A stretch of 64,000 nucleotides of DNA, from positions 1 through 64,000 of IMG/VR virus record IMGVR_UViG_3300042922_000643. One strand, written 5' to 3'. Within the stretch, counting starts at the first letter, position 1, and each line of letters starts with the position of its first letter. The position numbers and the translations under genes were made by a program. The notes under the pieces are model-generated. The model was given only the letters and a program-made list of their open reading frames with translations. It was not told the DNA's origin and made no database searches. Of this stretch, positions 32,862-52,437 are shown piece by piece.

Positions 32862-33392
32862 ATGGCCGTACCAGGCAGCCTGTGGGTTCAAGGGACCCAG
32901 CTTCGTTTTACGAGTCAAAGCGGAGTCAACTTTGCATATGAAGGTACTTATAGTAGCTCGCCTGCTGGAGCTAAACCAGGCAGCTCATGGATCGAAGGCG
33001 ATAACTTCGCTTATATCGACCAGTATGGTTCTAAAAGACTCGTTATTAATTATACTGCTACTAATATTCCCGCCGCAGTTGCAGGCAGCTTATGGATTTA
33101 TGGCAATTATCTTTATTGGATTAACACTAATAAGAATAAAACCTACGGACATGGAGATGCAACTCATCAGAATACAAGCTATAATGATGGTAGTTATAAC
33201 GATTATAATAATTCATCAACATCCCATGGTGATTCTACGGTAACTTTCCAAGATTCGCCGACACATGGTAATCATGTACCCTACCATGCGGACTGGCCTG
33301 CTTCACATACGGATAGCTATAACTATCAAGATACACACAACAATAGCTACCATACGGATACTCCACATGCTGATTATCCTATTCAAGTGTAG
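32862..33392 (+). CDS. Putative radical-SAM substrate: three GS(L/S)W repeats plus a tail with 14 aromatic-X-(D/N) motifs
   Basis: Repeats PGSLWVQG / PGSSWIEG / AGSLWIYG at 35-aa spacing; tail HGD,HQN,YND,YND,YNN,HGD,FQD,HGN,HAD,HTD,YQD,HNN,HTD,HAD. Confidence 0.75.
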   Translation: MAVPGSLWVQGTQLRFTSQSGVNFAYEGTYSSSPAGAKPGSSWIEGDNFAYIDQYGSKRLVINYTATNIPAAVAGSLWIYGNYLYWINTNKNKTYGHGDATHQNTSYNDGSYNDYNNSSTSHGDSTVTFQDSPTHGNHVPYHADWPASHTDSYNYQDTHNNSYHTDTPHADYPIQV

Positions 33393-33407
33393 GGAGGAGA
33401 GAACACA

Positions 33408-34628
33408 TTGACAACAGAAGTGAGACCTATGGGTGTTTCGTGTCCTTTAAAATGTGTTTATTGCTATCAAGAACCCCAGAGGGTTGCGGGAAATACTAAT
33501 GCAAAATATGATTTGGCGAAGATGATTCAGGAGATCTCAAAGACTCGAACAAAGAATATTAATTTCTTTGGTGGCGAGATCTTAATGATGCCTATAGAAG
33601 ATCTAGAGGTACTGCTGGCTTACGCTCATGTTAAGTTCGGTGGATCAGGTGTTCAAACCAGCGGATCTATCATGAGAGATGAACATATTGAACTCTTCAA
33701 AAAGTACAATGTTCAGCTGGGCTTCTCCATTGACGGTCCTAACGAGCTAAACAGTCTCCGAGTTCCACGCAATCCAAAGACTCCTATTGAAAGTACAACG
33801 GATAATACAATGAAATATATCAAGCTATCAAAAGAAGCTGGGCTTGATGTAGGCCTTATTATTACCCTTCATAGAGAAAACTCTACTCCAGAACGTATTC
33901 CACGGTTGTTTAATTTTATCAAGTGGTTATGGGATCTTGGTATTCGTAGCGGGAATATTCATACTCTAGAAATTGAATCTACAATGCCGAACCACGACTT
34001 TGTATTGACACAAGAAGAGAACATCTGGGCTTACACCCAACTTGCCGAGTTCTTTAAAACGCTTCCTGACCATGGATGGAATCCTTTCGCAGAGATTAAA
34101 GACTTACTGATGGGTAACGATCAAAAAACTCTTTGTTATTGGCACCGATGCGATCCATTGAATACTCAAGCTGTCCACGGAATCGAAGGTGACGGTGCAA
34201 TCTCTAACTGTGGACGAGCAAATAAAGAAGGAATTGACTGGGTCAAAGCTCCTGATAATTATTATGCAAGATACATCAGCTTCTATCATACGCCTCAAGA
34301 TATGGGTGGCTGTAATGGATGCCGCTTCTGGACAGTATGCGGAGGAAGTTGCCCAGGTGAATCCGATCAGGGGGATTTCAGAAATAAAACAACACATTGC
34401 TCTACTCAGAAAGCAATACTTTCCTATTATGAAAAAGAACTTATTGATGAAGGCAAGCTACCCATTACGACATCGCCTTTGCTTCCTCTTGTTGAACAGC
34501 TCGTTCTTAATGGTCTTGAAAGAGGAGAGAACTTATATCTTAATACTGTTATTTCAATGATTGAAGAGATGAGAACAGAAGTCATCCAACTGGAAGTCGT
34601 AGAGGAGGATATCAATGAAACTACTTGA
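33408..34628 (+). CDS. Radical SAM/SPASM peptide or protein maturase
   Basis: CPLKCVYC, FFGGE, QTSG, FSIDGP; SPASM cysteines CYWHRC, NC, CNGC-x5-C-x3-C-x15-C. Confidence 0.92.
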   Translation: MTTEVRPMGVSCPLKCVYCYQEPQRVAGNTNAKYDLAKMIQEISKTRTKNINFFGGEILMMPIEDLEVLLAYAHVKFGGSGVQTSGSIMRDEHIELFKKYNVQLGFSIDGPNELNSLRVPRNPKTPIESTTDNTMKYIKLSKEAGLDVGLIITLHRENSTPERIPRLFNFIKWLWDLGIRSGNIHTLEIESTMPNHDFVLTQEENIWAYTQLAEFFKTLPDHGWNPFAEIKDLLMGNDQKTLCYWHRCDPLNTQAVHGIEGDGAISNCGRANKEGIDWVKAPDNYYARYISFYHTPQDMGGCNGCRFWTVCGGSCPGESDQGDFRNKTTHCSTQKAILSYYEKELIDEGKLPITTSPLLPLVEQLVLNGLERGENLYLNTVISMIEEMRTEVIQLEVVEEDINETT

Positions 34629-35559
34629 TTTTAGTATGCCACCATTTGCAAGAACGGTTTGGGCCTCTCAAGAAATAGAGAAGGAGTGGCGTCCCAAACT
34701 GGCTTTAGCCTCTCAAGCTTATGAGCGTTTAGAGTATGAAACGGTTGTTCATGGCCTTAGAGCCTGTACAACAGCACATTGTACTCCTGATGATATGGTT
34801 CGTCGGATTCAATTTTATGCAAAGAAAGGTCTTATGTATCATCCCTTACAGCAAGTAGGTGCTTATACAGGGTTCGCTCATACACACCCTCCAGTTATTC
34901 CAGGAAAACCTTGGACCTGGTTCGGTGTTGTAGCTAAAGACCCTCTTGATGCTTACACCTTTGCTGAGGCATCTGCATTGACAGAAGATTCCGCGGGTAA
35001 GGAAATAGATCACTCAACGATTGGCACTCTTCTTGGATACCCTGAATGCTGCCGAAAGTTCTTCACAGATGTATGGGCCGCGGGATATGTTGATCCTGTA
35101 TGGCAACAAGCAGAAAACTGTGAAGGTGAATACGTAGTGAAGAAAGAAGAGCATCTTATTCAGCTAAGCAAGGAGACTCCATGGGAGACTTCACCACTAC
35201 TGAGATACATTGGAGTACGTATCATGCCTCACATTCCATGCTCTCATGATTGTAAACCTTCTCTGGTTATCGCAAGAAGTTGGTTGGATCTTGGTAGAGA
35301 GTTGGCCATACCAGGCATGGAAGAGCTTGAGCAATTTCTTCGGATGCCAGTAGAATGGGATTGCTTGAAGGGGATAGCCTATGTGTCTACTCCAATCTTC
35401 AAGATTGAAACGAATTCCATGACATGTTATCCACGGCATGTTGTTCAAAAGGAAGGAACATTTAGACCAAAGAGTGGAGCAAAAGGACTGAAGTTTCCTT
35501 TTATTCCGCTAGGATCTGATAAGTTTGCTCACCTCTTTGGAGGAGGAAGCGGGTGCTAA
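34615..35559 (+). CDS. Cys/His-rich partner protein (GYPECC motif, tentatively DUF483-like)
   Basis: Overlaps the rSAM stop; IGTLLGYPECC, HIPCSHDC, AHTH. Confidence 0.65.
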   Translation: MKLLDFSMPPFARTVWASQEIEKEWRPKLALASQAYERLEYETVVHGLRACTTAHCTPDDMVRRIQFYAKKGLMYHPLQQVGAYTGFAHTHPPVIPGKPWTWFGVVAKDPLDAYTFAEASALTEDSAGKEIDHSTIGTLLGYPECCRKFFTDVWAAGYVDPVWQQAENCEGEYVVKKEEHLIQLSKETPWETSPLLRYIGVRIMPHIPCSHDCKPSLVIARSWLDLGRELAIPGMEELEQFLRMPVEWDCLKGIAYVSTPIFKIETNSMTCYPRHVVQKEGTFRPKSGAKGLKFPFIPLGSDKFAHLFGGGSGC

Positions 35560-35562
35560 TTC

Positions 35563-35808
35563 ATGTTTAAACAACGTTTATGGGATTGCCTTTTGGCAGT
35601 CCTTTCTTTTATTGTAGCAATAGTATTAATCATTGGTATAGCTTTTCTAGCTGTTTTCTTGTCAGACATCTATTGGTTTAAGATACTTGTAAGTACTGTT
35701 GTTATTCTTATCTTGTCCTTCGTTGTTATTATCGCTCTTTCACTGTTTGTTAACTGGCTGTTTATTGAACCATACAAACATTGGAAAGAAGAAAATAAAA
35801 ACAGATAG
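35563..35808 (+). CDS. Small membrane protein (2 TM)
   Basis: Highly hydrophobic; 3 nt after the previous stop. Confidence 0.65.
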   Translation: MFKQRLWDCLLAVLSFIVAIVLIIGIAFLAVFLSDIYWFKILVSTVVILILSFVVIIALSLFVNWLFIEPYKHWKEENKNR

Positions 35809-35915: not shown

Positions 35916-36245
35916 ATGTTGATGAGATTGAGTTCGCAAAATGTAAGTAATGCTTTTATGACGTTCATGAAAGAGGCTCCTAAACAATACGAAGCTTGGC
36001 AAGAAATGATTATGAAACTTGACGTAGCAAGCGCACTTGTCAATAAGACAGAGGAGCTTGCCTATATTTCAGTTCTTGCCGCTGTTAGACTAGAAAGCGG
36101 TTTGGAGTTCCATGTAAAACAAGCAAAATCTTTTGGAGCTACGCGGGATGAAATCATTAGTGCAATTCTATTACCACTTCCCGCTGTTGGTAATGTAGCC
36201 ATTCAATCTCTACCAATCGCATTACAAGCTTACGATGTGTCATAA
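35916..36245 (+). CDS. Carboxymuconolactone decarboxylase (CMD/AhpD-like) family protein
   Basis: KTEELAYISVLAA...FHVKQAKSFGATRDEI. Confidence 0.8.
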   Translation: MLMRLSSQNVSNAFMTFMKEAPKQYEAWQEMIMKLDVASALVNKTEELAYISVLAAVRLESGLEFHVKQAKSFGATRDEIISAILLPLPAVGNVAIQSLPIALQAYDVS

Positions 36246-47800: not shown

Positions 47801-48700
47801 ATGCCAACAATGATTTTTAGCCACACCGATCTCGATGGAGTTGGTCCAATTGTGATTGCCAAAAAATATTTTGATGAAACTGTAGACTATAAGATGTGTA
47901 ACTATGATCGAATCGATGAAACGGTTCAGGAGTTTATTACTAGCGGCTCTTATATGAAATATGATAGAGTCATTATCACGGATATTTCGGTCAATAAAGA
48001 GACCGCTGGCCTTATTGATCACGTCACGAAAAATAACTGGCTCTTATTTGACCACCACCCGACGGCTCTTTGGCTCCATGACGCTTATTCTTGGGCGAAT
48101 GTGCGTGAGTATGAAGAAGATGGTGTTACCAAAACCTGTGGAACAAAGATGTTTTATGATTCCCTTGTAAGACACAATGAAATTATTGGTGGTGCTTCTG
48201 CATTCGTTTATCTGGTTCAGCAGTATGATACATGGGCCTGGAAAGAAACTAACAATCAGCAGGCTAAGAGATTGAACGATCTTTATTATCTGATTGGCCC
48301 TTCGAAGTTCATTGCTAGATTCTCTAATGAGATATCAACTACGCTTACCTATGAAGAAGAAACAATCCTTGATATCGAGAATGAAAAGATTGAAAAGTAT
48401 ATCAAGAAAAAGGCAGACGAAGTCTTAGCTCATAACATTGGAAAATATTCAGCGGGTGTTGTCTTTGCTGATCGTTACATTTCTGAGCTTGGTAATAAAC
48501 TTGCTGAAGCTTACCCTCAATTTGATTTCATTGCTATGGTAGATATGTCTAGTAAGAAGGTTAGCTACCGTACAGTTAGAGATGATATTAATGTTAGCGA
48601 GATTGCACAATATTATGGTGGCGGCGGACATCCAAAAGCTTCAGGCTCTCAGTTCAACCATAGACTGATTACACGTTTTCTAGACAATATATTTGAATAG
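47801..48700 (+). CDS. DHH/DHHA1 phosphoesterase (oligoribonuclease-like)
   Basis: SHTDLDG, ITDIS, FDHH, YDTW, GGGGHPKASG. Confidence 0.92.
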   Translation: MPTMIFSHTDLDGVGPIVIAKKYFDETVDYKMCNYDRIDETVQEFITSGSYMKYDRVIITDISVNKETAGLIDHVTKNNWLLFDHHPTALWLHDAYSWANVREYEEDGVTKTCGTKMFYDSLVRHNEIIGGASAFVYLVQQYDTWAWKETNNQQAKRLNDLYYLIGPSKFIARFSNEISTTLTYEEETILDIENEKIEKYIKKKADEVLAHNIGKYSAGVVFADRYISELGNKLAEAYPQFDFIAMVDMSSKKVSYRTVRDDINVSEIAQYYGGGGHPKASGSQFNHRLITRFLDNIFE

Positions 48701-49410
48701 GAGGATACTCTCATGGACGAATTATTAGAGCGCGTCAAGAAACTTGAATTCGTGGACACTTCTTTTTCTGGTGGAGAGGTTGAATACATGATGATTGAGA
48801 ATAGCATTGAGAATGTTGAGCTTCTTAGAGAGATTGGTATTCCCGAATTTGAAATCTGGTCATCTACAGATACTGATAGCGCAACGATTGATGTGGCTAT
48901 GTACATCTTTGACTTTTTATCAAGGTATAATATTACCCATTACCATACCAATCAAGGGTTTATGACTGAAAAAGAATATAGGTTGGTGACAGAAGATGAG
49001 TAGAGGTAGATATATGTTCATCGTTCAAACAGATAAGTATGCTGGAAACTTTGAACGTGAGATGTGTGCATATATGACAGGGCAATATGGCGAATGCGAA
49101 GTTGGCGATAGGGAAGCTGATGAGTTCACTGAAAGCGAAGGGGACGATCTCAAGAAATTGTTTGAGACTTTTATCCTTCAAGTTCCCGATGAACATGCAA
49201 TTGAGCGCCCTGTTGAAATTTCGAACATACATGATGATGGACACAAATCCTTTGCTATATTCTTCAGTAAAATACCACCTCGTAAGCTAGTAAAGATTAT
49301 GAAACATCGTGGTGATGAATATGCAGAGGAACATAATTTCAATGTATTAGGATACTCTCTGTATCTAGAGAGAAAAATAGTAGAAAGAATCGAATTGGAG
49401 CTGGATAAAG

Positions 49411-49662
49411 ATGAATAAATTTGTTTTCCGCGATGTGGAAGTTGAAGGTATCGCTGCTCGTATCCCAAAAAAAGACAGAGACCCTGAGTATTACTACTAT
49501 GAATTACGCCACGGAGATGAACCTCACCCGCCATTAACTATTGAACATGCTGTGATGGTGAATTTTTATGGAACTATCCGATCAGTTCTACCTATCCTTG
49601 TTGACGGAGAAGTTATTGATCTTACCGAAGACGAATCCTACGATATCGGATCAGAGATGTAA
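49411..49662 (+). CDS. LPD28-like domain protein
   Basis: YYYELRHGDE...TIEHAVMVNFYGTI. Confidence 0.65.
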   Translation: MNKFVFRDVEVEGIAARIPKKDRDPEYYYYELRHGDEPHPPLTIEHAVMVNFYGTIRSVLPILVDGEVIDLTEDESYDIGSEM

Positions 49663-49708
49663 AGGAGAAATAACAGGGAATGATAGAGTAATTACTTGAC
49701 CTGTAAAA

Positions 49709-49737
49709 GAAAAAGGCCCCTACTCGGGGGCCTCTTC
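49709..49737. terminator. Probable bidirectional terminator between convergent genes
   Basis: GGCCCC-TACTC-GGGGGCC hairpin preceded by an A-run. Confidence 0.6.
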
Positions 49738-50142
49738 TGTGGCTTCTGGGAGCCATTCTCCTGCTCTGATCTTCTCTTGCTCCCTAGCTTCCATCCAAAG
49801 ACGAACGGTGTCTTCAGGGACCTCACGGAAGTTGATGTTGTCTACTAGACCTTCAACTTGGTTATGTATATCATGTGCATCAAGATCGGGTTCATGCCAA
49901 ATCTTCCTACACGTACCACACTGCAAGATCACCGTATCTGTCTTTTCTCGGTATTCAAAGAACTTCAAATGGCCTGCGCATTTTGGGCAGTCACGACCTG
50001 TAGACCATTGGCTTTCAGCCACAGGCTGACCAGTTGTGCTTGGAGCTTGGATAATCTGTCTCCATATCGCACCAACTTGATCTAGTAGCTCCTCAGTTAA
50101 ACCATCATCGTTATTATAGGGGGTTCCTTTATTAATTGGCAT
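49720..50142 (-). CDS. Zn-ribbon hypothetical protein, isolated on the minus strand
   Basis: CPKC...CGTC; AAAGGAG RBS on the minus strand. Confidence 0.7.
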   Translation of the reverse strand: MPINKGTPYNNDDGLTEELLDQVGAIWRQIIQAPSTTGQPVAESQWSTGRDCPKCAGHLKFFEYREKTDTVILQCGTCRKIWHEPDLDAHDIHNQVEGLVDNINFREVPEDTVRLWMEAREQEKIRAGEWLPEATEEAPE

Positions 50143-50250
50143 CGGGATTCTCCTTTACGTATTGGTATAAAAATGGTATAATTCTTTATGACAAGTGTTT
50201 ACATTCCAGACTAAGCATAAGCGATTCAGGGTAAGGAAATCAATATATAA

Positions 50251-51117
50251 ATGGGGAATCAAGATATGACTGATGATTTTAAAAGACGTTACGATCAATT
50301 TGGTGACAACGCAAACCTAATCAATATGGTACACAACTTCTTACAGGAAGAAGGCCGTGCAAACCATCAGAAGCGTATCGACGAAGGACGCACAGGTAAA
50401 TTTTACCCTAGTTCTGTAGGCCGCTGTAATCGTCAAATTGCGTATCAGATGCTGGGCTACCCTGGAGCAGATAAAGCAGGGCAAACCATTCTGATTATGG
50501 ATAATGGAACCTACTTTCATAATCGTATGGAGGATATGTTTGAGCGTATGGGAATATTAGTAGCTCCTGAACTCAAGCTCGTTGATCCCGACCTAAGAAT
50601 TAGTGGTAGATCCGATGCGATCATCTGGAACTTTTTAAAAGAAGAAGATGAGCCTGACGGTGAGATCATTAGTCTGTACCAACCTAAAGCGATATTCGTG
50701 GCTGACGGAGAAGATATAGAGGTAATCTCTGAAGTCTATCATGGTCCCGCCAATAATGTTATGATCGTAGAATTTAAAAGCATTAAGAGTAAGAACTATG
50801 ACAAGCTTCCCAAGTCTAAGCCTAAAAAAGAACATGCTATGCAGTTACAGCTGTATATGTATATGACAGGAATTCGCAAGGGGCTTGTATACTACGAGAA
50901 TAAAGATACGCAGGAACAAAAATATTTCATCGTTGATTATGACCAGTCTGTCGTCGATGGTGTGATCAGCTCGATCCGCTCCATCATTGCTATGGTGGAC
51001 ATTGGCCAGCTTCCTGACAGAGAACACCCACCTATTAGCTTTGAATGCATGTATTGTGACTTCAAAGACATCTGCTATCCACAAAAACAAGAATTCAATA
51101 TTGACGATATATTTTAG
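50251..51117 (+). CDS. Cas4-like PD-(D/E)XK exonuclease
   Basis: YPSSVGRC, GTYFH, GRSD, VEFKS, QLQLYM, C-terminal CMYCDFKDIC. Confidence 0.88.
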   Translation: MGNQDMTDDFKRRYDQFGDNANLINMVHNFLQEEGRANHQKRIDEGRTGKFYPSSVGRCNRQIAYQMLGYPGADKAGQTILIMDNGTYFHNRMEDMFERMGILVAPELKLVDPDLRISGRSDAIIWNFLKEEDEPDGEIISLYQPKAIFVADGEDIEVISEVYHGPANNVMIVEFKSIKSKNYDKLPKSKPKKEHAMQLQLYMYMTGIRKGLVYYENKDTQEQKYFIVDYDQSVVDGVISSIRSIIAMVDIGQLPDREHPPISFECMYCDFKDICYPQKQEFNIDDIF

Positions 51118-51171
51118 AATATGATACAATACTTCTATAAGGATCGCTATCTTACCAAGATCACCTCAAAG

Positions 51172-51212
51172 AAAAGCCAGGGCCCGTCTAGTCAACGGAA
51201 GTCCTGGCTTTT
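51172..51212. terminator. Bidirectional terminator at the strand switch
   Basis: AAAAGCCAGGGC...GTCCTGGCTTTT. Confidence 0.75.
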
Positions 51213-51219
51213 GTCATGT

Positions 51220-51897
51220 CTATTCGTAATCAGGTAAATACTTGAGGAAGTCTTCGTTGGTATAACCAGCGAGCGACTCGTATGGACCAAGTTCTTGAGC
51301 AAAGGCTTCGGGACTATAGACTTCTCGCAAATGTTTAAGCTCGTCTTCATCATAGAGTCCTAGTCGTAATGCATCTCGATAATCATATTGTAAACATAAG
51401 AATTCATTTAGTGATTTCCCTTTGTTCTCTTCAATAAGCCGATCCATGAATGAACCTTTATGTAAGTAGCTGCCTGTAACTAAAAGTTTTGCCTGTGGGA
51501 AGTATCTTAGAATATCATCATCATTCATTCGAGGACCTTCTATAGCTCGTTTATATCCGCCCTCGTCAACTGCGATTCTTTCGAGTCGCAAACCTCTCAT
51601 TTCTTCCAGGTTCGAAGCAAAACGAATTGTAGATCCATTCTTAAGTACGATAATATCCCGATTACATATCTCAATTTGGTCTGCGTATCTATCCATGACA
51701 TCAACAACAATATGGTTTATCACATGCTTCCATTGTGTGAAATACAAAGCGTTTCCCTTTGTCTCTGCCAACCAATCAACAAGCATTGTTGTTTTTCCCA
51801 TCCGTCGTGCCATACGAACGATTGAGATTTTTGCGTCACTCTCATACAAAGCTGTCCGAATATCTTTCCCCAGTTCTAAAAGTCTTGCCTCACTCAT
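51220..51897 (-). CDS. Truncated terminase large-subunit ATPase-like protein, tag NEDFLKYLPDYE
   Basis: MARRMGKTT Walker A, LKNGSTIRF, MRG...IAVDEG Walker B, FAQE; no nuclease domain. Confidence 0.7.
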   Translation of the reverse strand: MSEARLLELGKDIRTALYESDAKISIVRMARRMGKTTMLVDWLAETKGNALYFTQWKHVINHIVVDVMDRYADQIEICNRDIIVLKNGSTIRFASNLEEMRGLRLERIAVDEGGYKRAIEGPRMNDDDILRYFPQAKLLVTGSYLHKGSFMDRLIEENKGKSLNEFLCLQYDYRDALRLGLYDEDELKHLREVYSPEAFAQELGPYESLAGYTNEDFLKYLPDYE

Positions 51898-52437
51898 CTA
51901 CTTTTCCTCCCCAAATAATTGGATGCCGAGCTTTGCGTCGGCTGCATAAATCTTTCCTTTAACCAATTCCTCTGTGATCTTTTCATTGTGCGCAATGCGA
52001 ATTAATGTGACGTTATTCTTTTTACACCCGATATCTTTCAGGCGATCACATTCTTGATAGTACTGGAAGTTCTTCACGCTTTTATGTATGTATTTTTTAT
52101 ACTCCGTATGTGTAGAGCCATCGAACTCAAAGCCAAGCCGAAGCTGTGGGTAGTAACGATCTATCTGTAGCTCACTGTTTTTAGGGCTGCGTAGGAATGA
52201 GTAGAAGCCGTGGTTGATATATTCGTAGCTTCCAAGGAGAGGTTCTAATACGGAGAATAAAGAGAGTTCACCTTCGGTGTTCTTGTTCTTAGGATAGCGG
52301 CGCTTACCTCGCTTGCTTTTAGACTTAGCTTTCGGAGGAGCTTCTTTCTTAACCGATTTACACTCCTCGCATTTGAGCGGCTTCTTCGTTGTGTATTCCA
52401 TAACGATGCCGCAGTTGATACACTTTGTATACTTCAC
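51898..52437 (-). CDS. Zn ribbon plus Vsr/DUF559-like endonuclease
   Basis: CINC..CEEC; LQID.Y...FEFDGSTH...DRLK...LIRI. Confidence 0.75.
   Translation of the reverse strand: MKYTKCINCGIVMEYTTKKPLKCEECKSVKKEAPPKAKSKSKRGKRRYPKNKNTEGELSLFSVLEPLLGSYEYINHGFYSFLRSPKNSELQIDRYYPQLRLGFEFDGSTHTEYKKYIHKSVKNFQYYQECDRLKDIGCKKNNVTLIRIAHNEKITEELVKGKIYAADAKLGIQLFGEEK

Follow-up and report, generated by a model that had tools for sequence, protein, structure and literature searches.

A divergent DUF483 protein as a candidate accessory subunit of a proposed radical SAM protein maturase in a soil jumbo phage

The protein encoded at positions 34615-35559 (plus strand) of a soil jumbo phage genome, hereafter the partner, belongs, by sequence comparison, to a divergent subfamily of the uncharacterised family DUF483, and we lean towards viewing it as an accessory subunit, obligatory for a triceptide-like protein maturase that the phage carries. 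In its full form, which we hold to be somewhat on the probable side, this reading has the partner holding a metal site, docking onto the SPASM domain of the radical S-adenosylmethionine (SAM) enzyme encoded directly upstream, and serving the cross-linking of the tail of a third protein encoded in front of that enzyme. The genome is the 251,543-bp virus record IMGVR_UViG_3300042922_000643 of IMG/VR, rated complete by CheckV and having a G+C content of 42%. The window, i.e. the whole stretch of DNA analysed, is its initial 64 kb (64,000 nucleotides); the stretch was found in three soil metagenome sequencing runs, none of them an RNA run. The initial annotation, made from the window sequence alone, had regarded the gene as a possible second tailoring enzyme or chaperone of the radical SAM enzyme. 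The evidence presented below favours an accessory or docking subunit, a catalytic role being less probable.

The gene order is HxD protein (named after its arrays of His-x-Asp motifs), SPASM radical SAM enzyme, DUF483-like partner. The HxD protein (32862-33392, plus strand; 176 aa), a gene overlooked by the initial annotation, is the likely substrate. The radical SAM open reading frame (ORF; 33408-34628, plus strand; 406 aa, TTG start) begins 15 nt past the stop of the HxD gene, and its ribosome-binding site GGAGGAG (33393-33399, plus strand) lies right after the TAG stop of that gene and 8 nt before the TTG. The partner gene (314 aa) starts with an ATG at 34615, inside the 3′ end of the radical SAM ORF, whose TGA stop is at 34626-34628. 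The 14-nt overlap, together with a ribosome-binding site of its own (GAGGAGG at 34602-34608, plus strand, within the radical SAM coding sequence and 6 nt before the ATG), corroborates the translational coupling proposed earlier. A word search retrieved 77 partner homologues with E-values down to 1e-177, and ORF 34615-35559 is a real conserved gene.

We gathered 82 loci via the partner, 80 from IMG/VR and two bacterial or metagenomic. ORFs were called at the longest start, so that gaps and overlaps in the other loci are approximate, and loci counted as ending early were judged by distance to contig ends. A radical SAM enzyme of the same clade is present in 82 of 82 partner loci wherever sequence exists on the relevant side, mostly directly upstream of the partner gene; the enzyme of one locus (L009) initially escaped detection only through ambiguous bases. 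The stop of the radical SAM gene and the start of the partner gene usually overlap or nearly abut in the related loci. In the reverse search, the partner was found in 67 of 74 phage loci collected via the clade radical SAM enzyme, and in the seven loci lacking it the contig ends within ~1.8 kb of its expected place. Six distant radical SAM enzymes (<75 bits) are accompanied by neither partner nor HxD protein. Within the subfamily, partner and radical SAM enzyme are thus linked both ways, which is the outcome of the co-occurrence check proposed in the initial annotation. Eight other genes neighbouring the cassette in the window, including the 81-aa membrane protein, the CMD-like protein and a 105-aa upstream ORF, have no homologue in the 82 related loci; only the trio of HxD protein, radical SAM enzyme and partner is conserved. 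In a sample of 401 genomes from the phylum of Chengkuizengella, strong partner matches occur in three, a sporadic distribution expected for mobile DNA, and a genome-contig search with a closer alignment set returned only Chengkuizengella axinellae.

Natural fusions join the same components. Among the best 150 relatives of the partner, four in five exceed 400 aa, and the DUF483-like part almost always comes first. Ten long forms with the DUF483-like part N-terminal were scanned, and in nine of them a class I SAM methyltransferase makes up the extension; that of P0080 produced no methyltransferase match at E≤0.001. One protein (P0086) combines Radical_SAM, DUF483-like and methyltransferase parts in the order of the operon. 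PqqD is fused in front of a DUF483-like part and a methyltransferase in P0088, and in P0176 it stands between the DUF483-like part and a part of unknown identity. The loci of these three fusions all have a radical SAM enzyme, fused or adjoining, and an HxD-rich ORF. Four further relatives (L014, L016, P0083 and P0138) consist of a GT2 glycosyltransferase and a DUF483-like part.

The complex of radical SAM enzyme and partner was predicted with interface scores (ipSAE) of 0.88, 0.90 and 0.86, as compared to 0.00 for each of three controls. The confidence of the partner (predicted local distance difference test, pLDDT) was at least 87 in the complex, and at least 96% of contacts were common to the runs. 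In the model, partner residues 4-22 and 251-308 contact residues 23-29, 251-301 and 323-326 of the radical SAM enzyme, i.e. its SPASM domain. The first segment is the N-terminal strand (34624-34680, plus strand), with the conserved residues R13 and W16 (kept in 57/59 and 57/61 sequences, respectively). The second, a C-terminal β-sheet (35365-35538, plus strand) with an L-[K/H]-G-I-A motif and a near-invariant G253, makes the main predicted contact, with enzyme residues 287-295 and 323-326. The predicted contacts include invariant G263, R288, D323 and R325 of the enzyme, and R13, W16 and G253 of the partner. Thus, the partner is predicted to dock onto the SPASM domain. Taken together, adjacency, natural fusion and the predicted complex support the view that the partner belongs with this radical SAM enzyme, as was initially assumed.

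Taken alone, the partner scores below the gathering cut-off of the Pfam DUF483 family, PF04467 (19.8 bits, E=8.5e-4; cut-off 25 bits), the match spanning only its residues 129-154 and positions 31-56 of the 122-position profile; when the genome was searched in all six frames, the score against this family was 19.4 bits. However, PF04467 is matched at E≤0.01 by 51 of 59 full-length relatives (best E=2.6e-7), a few of them above the cut-off (L031 with 28.2 bits, L070 and P0188 with 25.7 bits), and the nearest structure clusters in the ESM Atlas carry PF04467. The tentative link to DUF483 made in the initial annotation was therefore right at the level of the family, and it is as a divergent subfamily that the partner and its relatives are best described. 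Profile searching across 1.84 billion representatives assigned 3,510 cluster representatives, mostly from phages, to the subfamily at E≤1e-3, and 1,048 of these pass E≤1e-30. The partner had no match in PHROGs, NCBIfam or PADLOC, neither it nor the HxD protein reached an NCBIfam model at E≤0.1, and a profile search of Protein Data Bank (PDB) sequences with the partner gave nothing below E=1.

Canonical PF04467 members are known from archaea (those of M. jannaschii and S. acidocaldarius served as controls) and some bacteria, and are uncharacterised. They share with the subfamily a core of ~100 aa in which GYPxCC is followed, ~60 residues on, by (H)xPCxxxC; the GYPxCC and downstream PCxxxC cysteines are common to the partner and to canonical members L172-L176. 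Unlike canonical members, the subfamily has an N-terminal domain and a C-terminal sheet of its own, and these are the predicted surfaces for binding the radical SAM enzyme. The distinction is also seen among the 401 genomes, five of which yielded weak matches: all five are DUF483 proteins, ~300-340 aa long, whose shared part is the GYPxCC...PCxxxC core alone, with four scoring 29-35 bits against PF04467 and one (L176) 24.9 bits, with the cut-off at 25. In the neighbourhoods of four canonical DUF483 genes (L177-L180; 25-35 bits), a small sample with crude annotation, there is no adjacent radical SAM gene and no HxD protein; one radical SAM-like ORF lies ~3.5 kb from the canonical gene in L180. 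Because of these four genes, the radical SAM link appears specific to the subfamily, and what the entire DUF483 family has in common is the Cys module. The same four proteins, from bacterial genomes G038, G308, G345 and G319, share an N-terminal domain that is conserved among themselves and are encoded near membrane-protein and redox genes; they probably perform a different job with the same Cys module. In addition, one bacterial genome encodes a shorter DUF483-like paralogue (L170:318-1001, minus strand; 227 aa) with GYPRCC and PCTLRC motifs, ~0.4 kb from a partner gene linked to a radical SAM enzyme; this paralogue had no Pfam match at E≤0.01.

Conservation was counted in two partner alignments, of 59 and 61 sequences. 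All four motifs from which metal binding had initially been suggested are found in the partner, namely ACTTAHC (residues 50-56), FAHTH (87-91), LLGYPECC (139-146) and HIPCSHDC (206-213), and the suggestion can be retained for the last two. Cysteines C145, C146 and C213 are invariant in both alignments. C209, retained in 55/59 and 54/61 sequences, is substituted only by His (one and seven sequences) or Asp (three), an exchange suggestive of a metal ligand, and H206 is present in 51/59 and 57/61. By contrast, ACTTAHC and FAHTH are poorly conserved (C51 in 36/59 and 22/61, H55 in 37/59 and 18/61, C56 in 2/59; H89 in 47/59 and 28/61, H91 in 46/59 and 27/61), and the proposal is therefore limited to GYPxCC and HxxCxxxC. 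The invariant C145-C146 of GYPECC (residues 141-146; 35035-35052, plus strand) starts helix 144-155, and HIPCSHDC (35230-35253, plus strand) contributes H206, C209 and C213. C145, C146, C209 and C213, perhaps with H206, may thus form a structural or redox metal site binding zinc or an iron-sulfur cluster. The Cys site lies outside the confident predicted interface. Further invariant or near-invariant residues are R13, W16, E40, R49 (or K), W154, D160, R197, R202, W248 and G253.

The candidate substrate has two parts. Its N-terminal domain (residues 1-~95) is a triple GSxW(V/I)xGxx(L/F)xY(I) repeat, homologues of which are encoded upstream of the radical SAM gene in 43 loci. The C-terminal tail (residues 97-176; nucleotides 33150-33389) is rich in His, Asp, Asn and Tyr, contains nine H-x-[D/N] motifs and additional Y/F-x-[D/N] motifs, and terminates in HADYPIQV. 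In the 251.5-kb genome the HxD gene is the only ORF with at least four HxD/N motifs per 60 aa. An HxD-rich ORF (at least six motifs per 60 aa) is present in 76 of the 82 loci, nearly always directly upstream of the radical SAM or partner gene, and the remaining six loci are either incomplete at the contig end or have F-x-N instead; 4,769 of the 5,817 other ORFs in those loci contain no such motif at all. In a set of 83 distinct HxD-rich proteins, 95 to 1,471 aa in length, Asp (77%) or Asn (18%) occupies i+2 after 95% of the His residues in the repeat region. A spacing of 5 is the most frequent, and many tails finish with H-x-D-[Q/N/Y]-P-x-x-V-G. In Thermus phage Cumys the HxD protein, gp13, has 54 motifs and is encoded between baseplate and tail-collar-fibre genes on one side and the genes for the radical SAM enzyme (gp12) and DUF483 protein (gp11) on the other. 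The large HxD proteins match only PHROG 8917 (unknown function), Gly_rich_2 and, weakly, a tail fibre, and since family matches are so few, it is chiefly from the gene order in Cumys that the proposed virion role derives.

Several variants of this protein were observed. Some phages have F-x-N or F-x-D arrays in place of H-x-D (PFDNTPFSNTPF..., AFTN, PFSN), encoded upstream of the radical SAM gene (L068:2908-3945; also L054, L056, L058, L065 and L066), which suggests that different residues can take the aromatic position, as is the case for known cyclophane enzymes. A Cys-rich knot forms the C-terminal end of some of these proteins. In eight loci (L043, L056, L058, L065, L066, L103, L104 and L112), two to three tandem HxD/HxN-array genes precede a single radical SAM gene and a single partner-methyltransferase gene, pointing to several substrates per maturase. 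The bacterial locus L087 encodes a 78-aa peptide (L087:7008-7244), adjoining a PqqD-DUF483-methyltransferase gene, in which a twin-arginine-like leader of the RRxxLLK type (RRRTLLKAGWALPV) is followed by a four-motif HxD core (FHTDFHGDHSDSGHTDTG). This hints at an exported, perhaps metal-binding, product.

The radical SAM enzyme has its CxxxCxxC motif at residues 12-19, leaving no N-terminal recognition domain. Its SPASM motif is complete (C243, C248-x14-G263-x4-C268, C302-x2-C305-x5-C311-x3-C315, C331), and CxxxCxxC, the seven-Cys SPASM pattern and C243 are all invariant across 61 radical SAM sequences. The enzyme matches Pfam Radical_SAM with 59 bits and PHROG 1802 with E=8e-29. Its best NCBIfam matches are peptide maturases, with cyclophane formers leading, all far under the respective cut-offs. 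Two other assignments were considered and dropped. Prokaryotic viperin (pVip) matches only the radical SAM core (residues 11-159, 47 bits), with no PADLOC match for the partner or the substrate, and membership in the His-Xaa-Ser (Hxs) system is contradicted by a score of 36 bits against HxsB (cut-off 370) and by the lack of matches for the other two proteins. Several clade enzymes carry H-x-D motifs in C-terminal tails, e.g. HGDYTDHGDAPHGDHWDG, including those of Thermus phages Cumys (L083:3734-4984) and phiLo (L084:3427-4875) and that of L009 (L009:4628-6004). Such tails could be self-substrates, pseudo-substrates or partner-binding tails.

Three-residue cyclophane enzymes link the aromatic ring of residue i to the β-carbon of residue i+2, in motifs such as Tyr-x-Asp (Y-x-D; YxdB), His-x-x (H-x-x; HaaB, YhhB) and Trp/Phe-x-Asn/Asp (W/F-x-N/D; OscB, XncB) (PMC11002830). 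The triceptide-like reading is based on the corresponding H/Y/F-x-[D/N] grammar of the tails, the full SPASM motif and the best family matches of the radical SAM enzyme being to peptide maturases. Accordingly worded as a mechanism, a heterodimer of radical SAM enzyme and partner would process the tail of the 176-aa protein encoded upstream, with the enzyme most likely linking each His (or Tyr/Phe) ring to the β-carbon of the Asp or Asn two residues on. The partner would stabilise or activate the enzyme and help to hold the repetitive substrate; in relatives, it might act as a hub bringing extra tailoring domains (methyltransferase, glycosyltransferase, PqqD) to the same substrate. A broader proposal, which we advance with less conviction and regard as possible rather than probable, is that tailed phages and some bacteria possess a two-subunit maturase, composed of a SPASM radical SAM enzyme and a DUF483-like metal protein, that would introduce dozens to ~100 His/Tyr/Phe-to-Asp/Asn cross-links per whole protein, many of the targets being virion or tail-fibre proteins.

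Several observations weigh against the accessory-subunit reading. The radical SAM enzyme reaches the known cyclophane families only with scores far below their cut-offs (AmcB 72.5 bits, cut-off 425; YhhB 50, cut-off 445; XyeB 38.8, cut-off 450; GrrM/OscB 38.7, cut-off 310). The ipSAE mark, which 58 of 80 solved complexes attained along with 2 of 110 mismatched pairs, applies only roughly to the complex predicted here, because that run used custom alignments, and the set of interface residues is barely more conserved than the remainder of the protein (permutation p=0.09 and 0.12). The cross-link and the metal are deduced, and the physical complex is model output. The fusion of PqqD to some relatives speaks against leader recognition by the DUF483-like part itself. 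Finally, invariant E40, R49 (or K), D160, R197 and R202, which lie outside both the interface and the Cys site, would equally fit an active site.

This last point bears on the strongest rival explanation, in which the partner is a second tailoring enzyme acting, by way of its conserved Cys, His, Asp and Arg residues or a catalytic metal in the Cys site, on the H-x-D motifs before or after the radical SAM enzyme, with binding to the latter only channelling the substrate. In addition to the five residues just named, W154, W248 and the four-Cys site are (near-)invariant outside the predicted interface; C145 and C146 are located at a helix N-terminus, a frequent place for nucleophilic cysteines; and the PqqD-DUF483-methyltransferase fusions resemble a recognition domain feeding enzymes. 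Structure comparison adds a weak fold resemblance. The AlphaFold2 model of the partner, based on 59 sequences, is of high confidence (pLDDT 93.4, predicted TM-score 0.89), yet Foldseek found no match at E≤0.001 in the PDB or among the viral models of BFVD. Among 48,161 PDB representatives compared with VIA-align, only 2guk (Z 6.1, root-mean-square deviation (rmsd) 3.7 Å, 104 residues) and the cysteine methyltransferase NleE (Z 4.4, rmsd 3.5 Å, 106 residues, 11% identity; Foldseek E=0.6) were retrieved, both over partner residues 35-158, and such Z values are also reached by unrelated models, so that both likenesses fall within the range of chance. A literature search on 2GUK returned nothing relevant. 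The Cys-bearing half (residues 126-298) reached a Z of at most 2.1 when modelled by itself (pLDDT 94.5). The ESM Atlas yielded only DUF483-type clusters, one bacterial and the rest viral with methyltransferase domains; DUF3793 (TM-score 0.36-0.58) also appeared there, as did DUF6302, with a feature match of 0.76 that is beneath the useful range. The partner has no sequence match to any enzyme family, the replacement of C209 by His or Asp suits a ligand more than a nucleophile, and a protein fused to three unrelated kinds of enzyme looks more like an adaptor. On balance, we consider a second enzyme unlikely, though less so than the remaining alternatives.

The location of the predicted docking site invites another possibility, namely that the partner is an iron-sulfur electron-transfer subunit serving the auxiliary clusters of the SPASM domain and making the phage enzyme independent of host reductants. 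The docking would occur on the very region bearing the auxiliary-cluster cysteines, and four conserved Cys residues, one position of which may be His or Asp, could hold a cluster. However, the confident part of the interface does not include these cysteines, canonical DUF483 proteins whose genes have no radical SAM neighbour contain this Cys module too, and an adjacent CC pair combined with CxxxC spacing is not known to match any ferredoxin-type motif. We therefore judge such a relay to be improbable.

Least credible of all, in our view, is that the module modifies phage DNA instead of protein, an idea put forward as speculation for Thermus phages Cumys and phiMa: homologues do lie beside deazapurine DNA-modification genes in some cyanobacteria (bioRxiv 10.1101/2024.08.14.607894) and the window cassette is set amid nucleotide-metabolism and replication genes, but the third gene of the module always encodes an H-x-[D/N]-array protein (the 54-motif gp13 of Cumys included), the Cumys module comes after baseplate and tail-fibre genes, PqqD fusions and, in bacteria, adjoining short leader-plus-core peptides occur, and the radical SAM enzyme has a full SPASM motif and is closest to peptide maturases.

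The Thermus phages provide one of the closest known parallels to the proposed maturase. Phages Cumys, phiMa and phiLo encode direct homologues of the partner, with 41-47% identity over 92-94% of the protein, in a module of the same order (HxD protein, radical SAM enzyme, DUF483 protein). They differ from the 251-kb soil jumbo phage studied here in host, in genome size (50-178 kb) and in the C-terminal HxD motifs of their radical SAM enzymes, which are missing from the window enzyme. Our literature search on radical SAM and DUF483 found only a 2024 preprint on these phages, which describes the module of radical SAM, DUF483 and third gene as well as InterPro fusions, leaves the function open, suggests DNA modification and does not name the repeat protein as substrate (bioRxiv 10.1101/2024.08.14.607894). 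The expectation that the gene context in the window would give the first functional lead for DUF483 was thus overtaken by the preprint and, given the four canonical genes with no adjacent radical SAM gene, does not extend to the whole family. Neither HxD arrays with this machinery nor an HxD substrate is described in the open literature that we found, which is no proof of absence. A report on the conversion of aspartate to aminomalonate (PMC12186529) proved unrelated.

Triceptide systems (XncB, OscB, MscB, YxdB, HaaB, YhhB) likewise consist of a SPASM radical SAM enzyme and a substrate with repeated aromatic-x-X motifs. In contrast to their short peptides, the substrates of the cassette are 170-1,470 aa long with up to ~110 motifs, and its radical SAM enzyme is devoid of a recognition domain; a DUF483-like subunit is not named for these systems in PMC11002830. 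Another point of comparison is PqqD, the RiPP recognition element (RiPPs, peptides made on ribosomes and then modified post-translationally) that assists PqqE-type SPASM enzymes. Like the partner, it is a discrete small protein that is sometimes fused, and the two may work similarly, as accessory subunits required for processing the substrate. However, they are unrelated in sequence and fold (PF05402 matches neither the partner nor the radical SAM enzyme, and structure searches with the partner gave no winged helix-turn-helix fold), and the presence of a separate PqqD domain in some relatives indicates that they are not equivalent. The Hxs system (HxsA, the radical SAM enzymes HxsB and HxsC, and HxsD; TIGR03978), defined by bioinformatics, is likewise a radical SAM system with a target, HxsA, that contains His-x-small-polar repeats, but the third residue is Ser instead of Asp or Asn and two radical SAM enzymes are involved instead of one.

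DUF483 has been without a function since its definition, and the cassette offers a cheap and concrete test, since its three genes lie side by side, the candidate substrate has 176 aa and a mass change of -2 Da per motif is expected, as for a C-C cross-link. If the proposed maturase is real, phages would employ radical SAM cross-linking, known from small RiPP peptides, on large and probably structural proteins, making triceptide-type chemistry a protein-scale structural modification of phage particles. SPASM enzymes that have no recognition domain could then depend for docking on a subunit unrelated to such domains, with the DUF483-like domain representing a new class of radical SAM accessory and a hub for methyltransferase, glycosyltransferase or PqqD modules. 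In that case metal would be bound by the Cys module of DUF483, and the DNA-modification suggestion for the Thermus phages would be redirected to protein.

The surroundings of the cassette in the window include genes of nucleotide metabolism and replication (dUTPase, primase, thymidine kinase and SNF2 helicase). Starting 4 nt past the partner stop, an 81-aa ORF (35563-35808), for which two membrane-spanning stretches are predicted, lies tightly against the cassette, GGAGGAGG being located inside the end of the partner gene. It is followed by a 109-aa carboxymuconolactone-decarboxylase/AhpD-like (CMD) protein (35916-36245; Pfam, 39 bits) that has no cysteines. Farther downstream, the GC skew flips sign and the cumulative skew is maximal near 48-50 kb; this change (~48000-52000) suggests a switch of the coding strand or a replication-related boundary.

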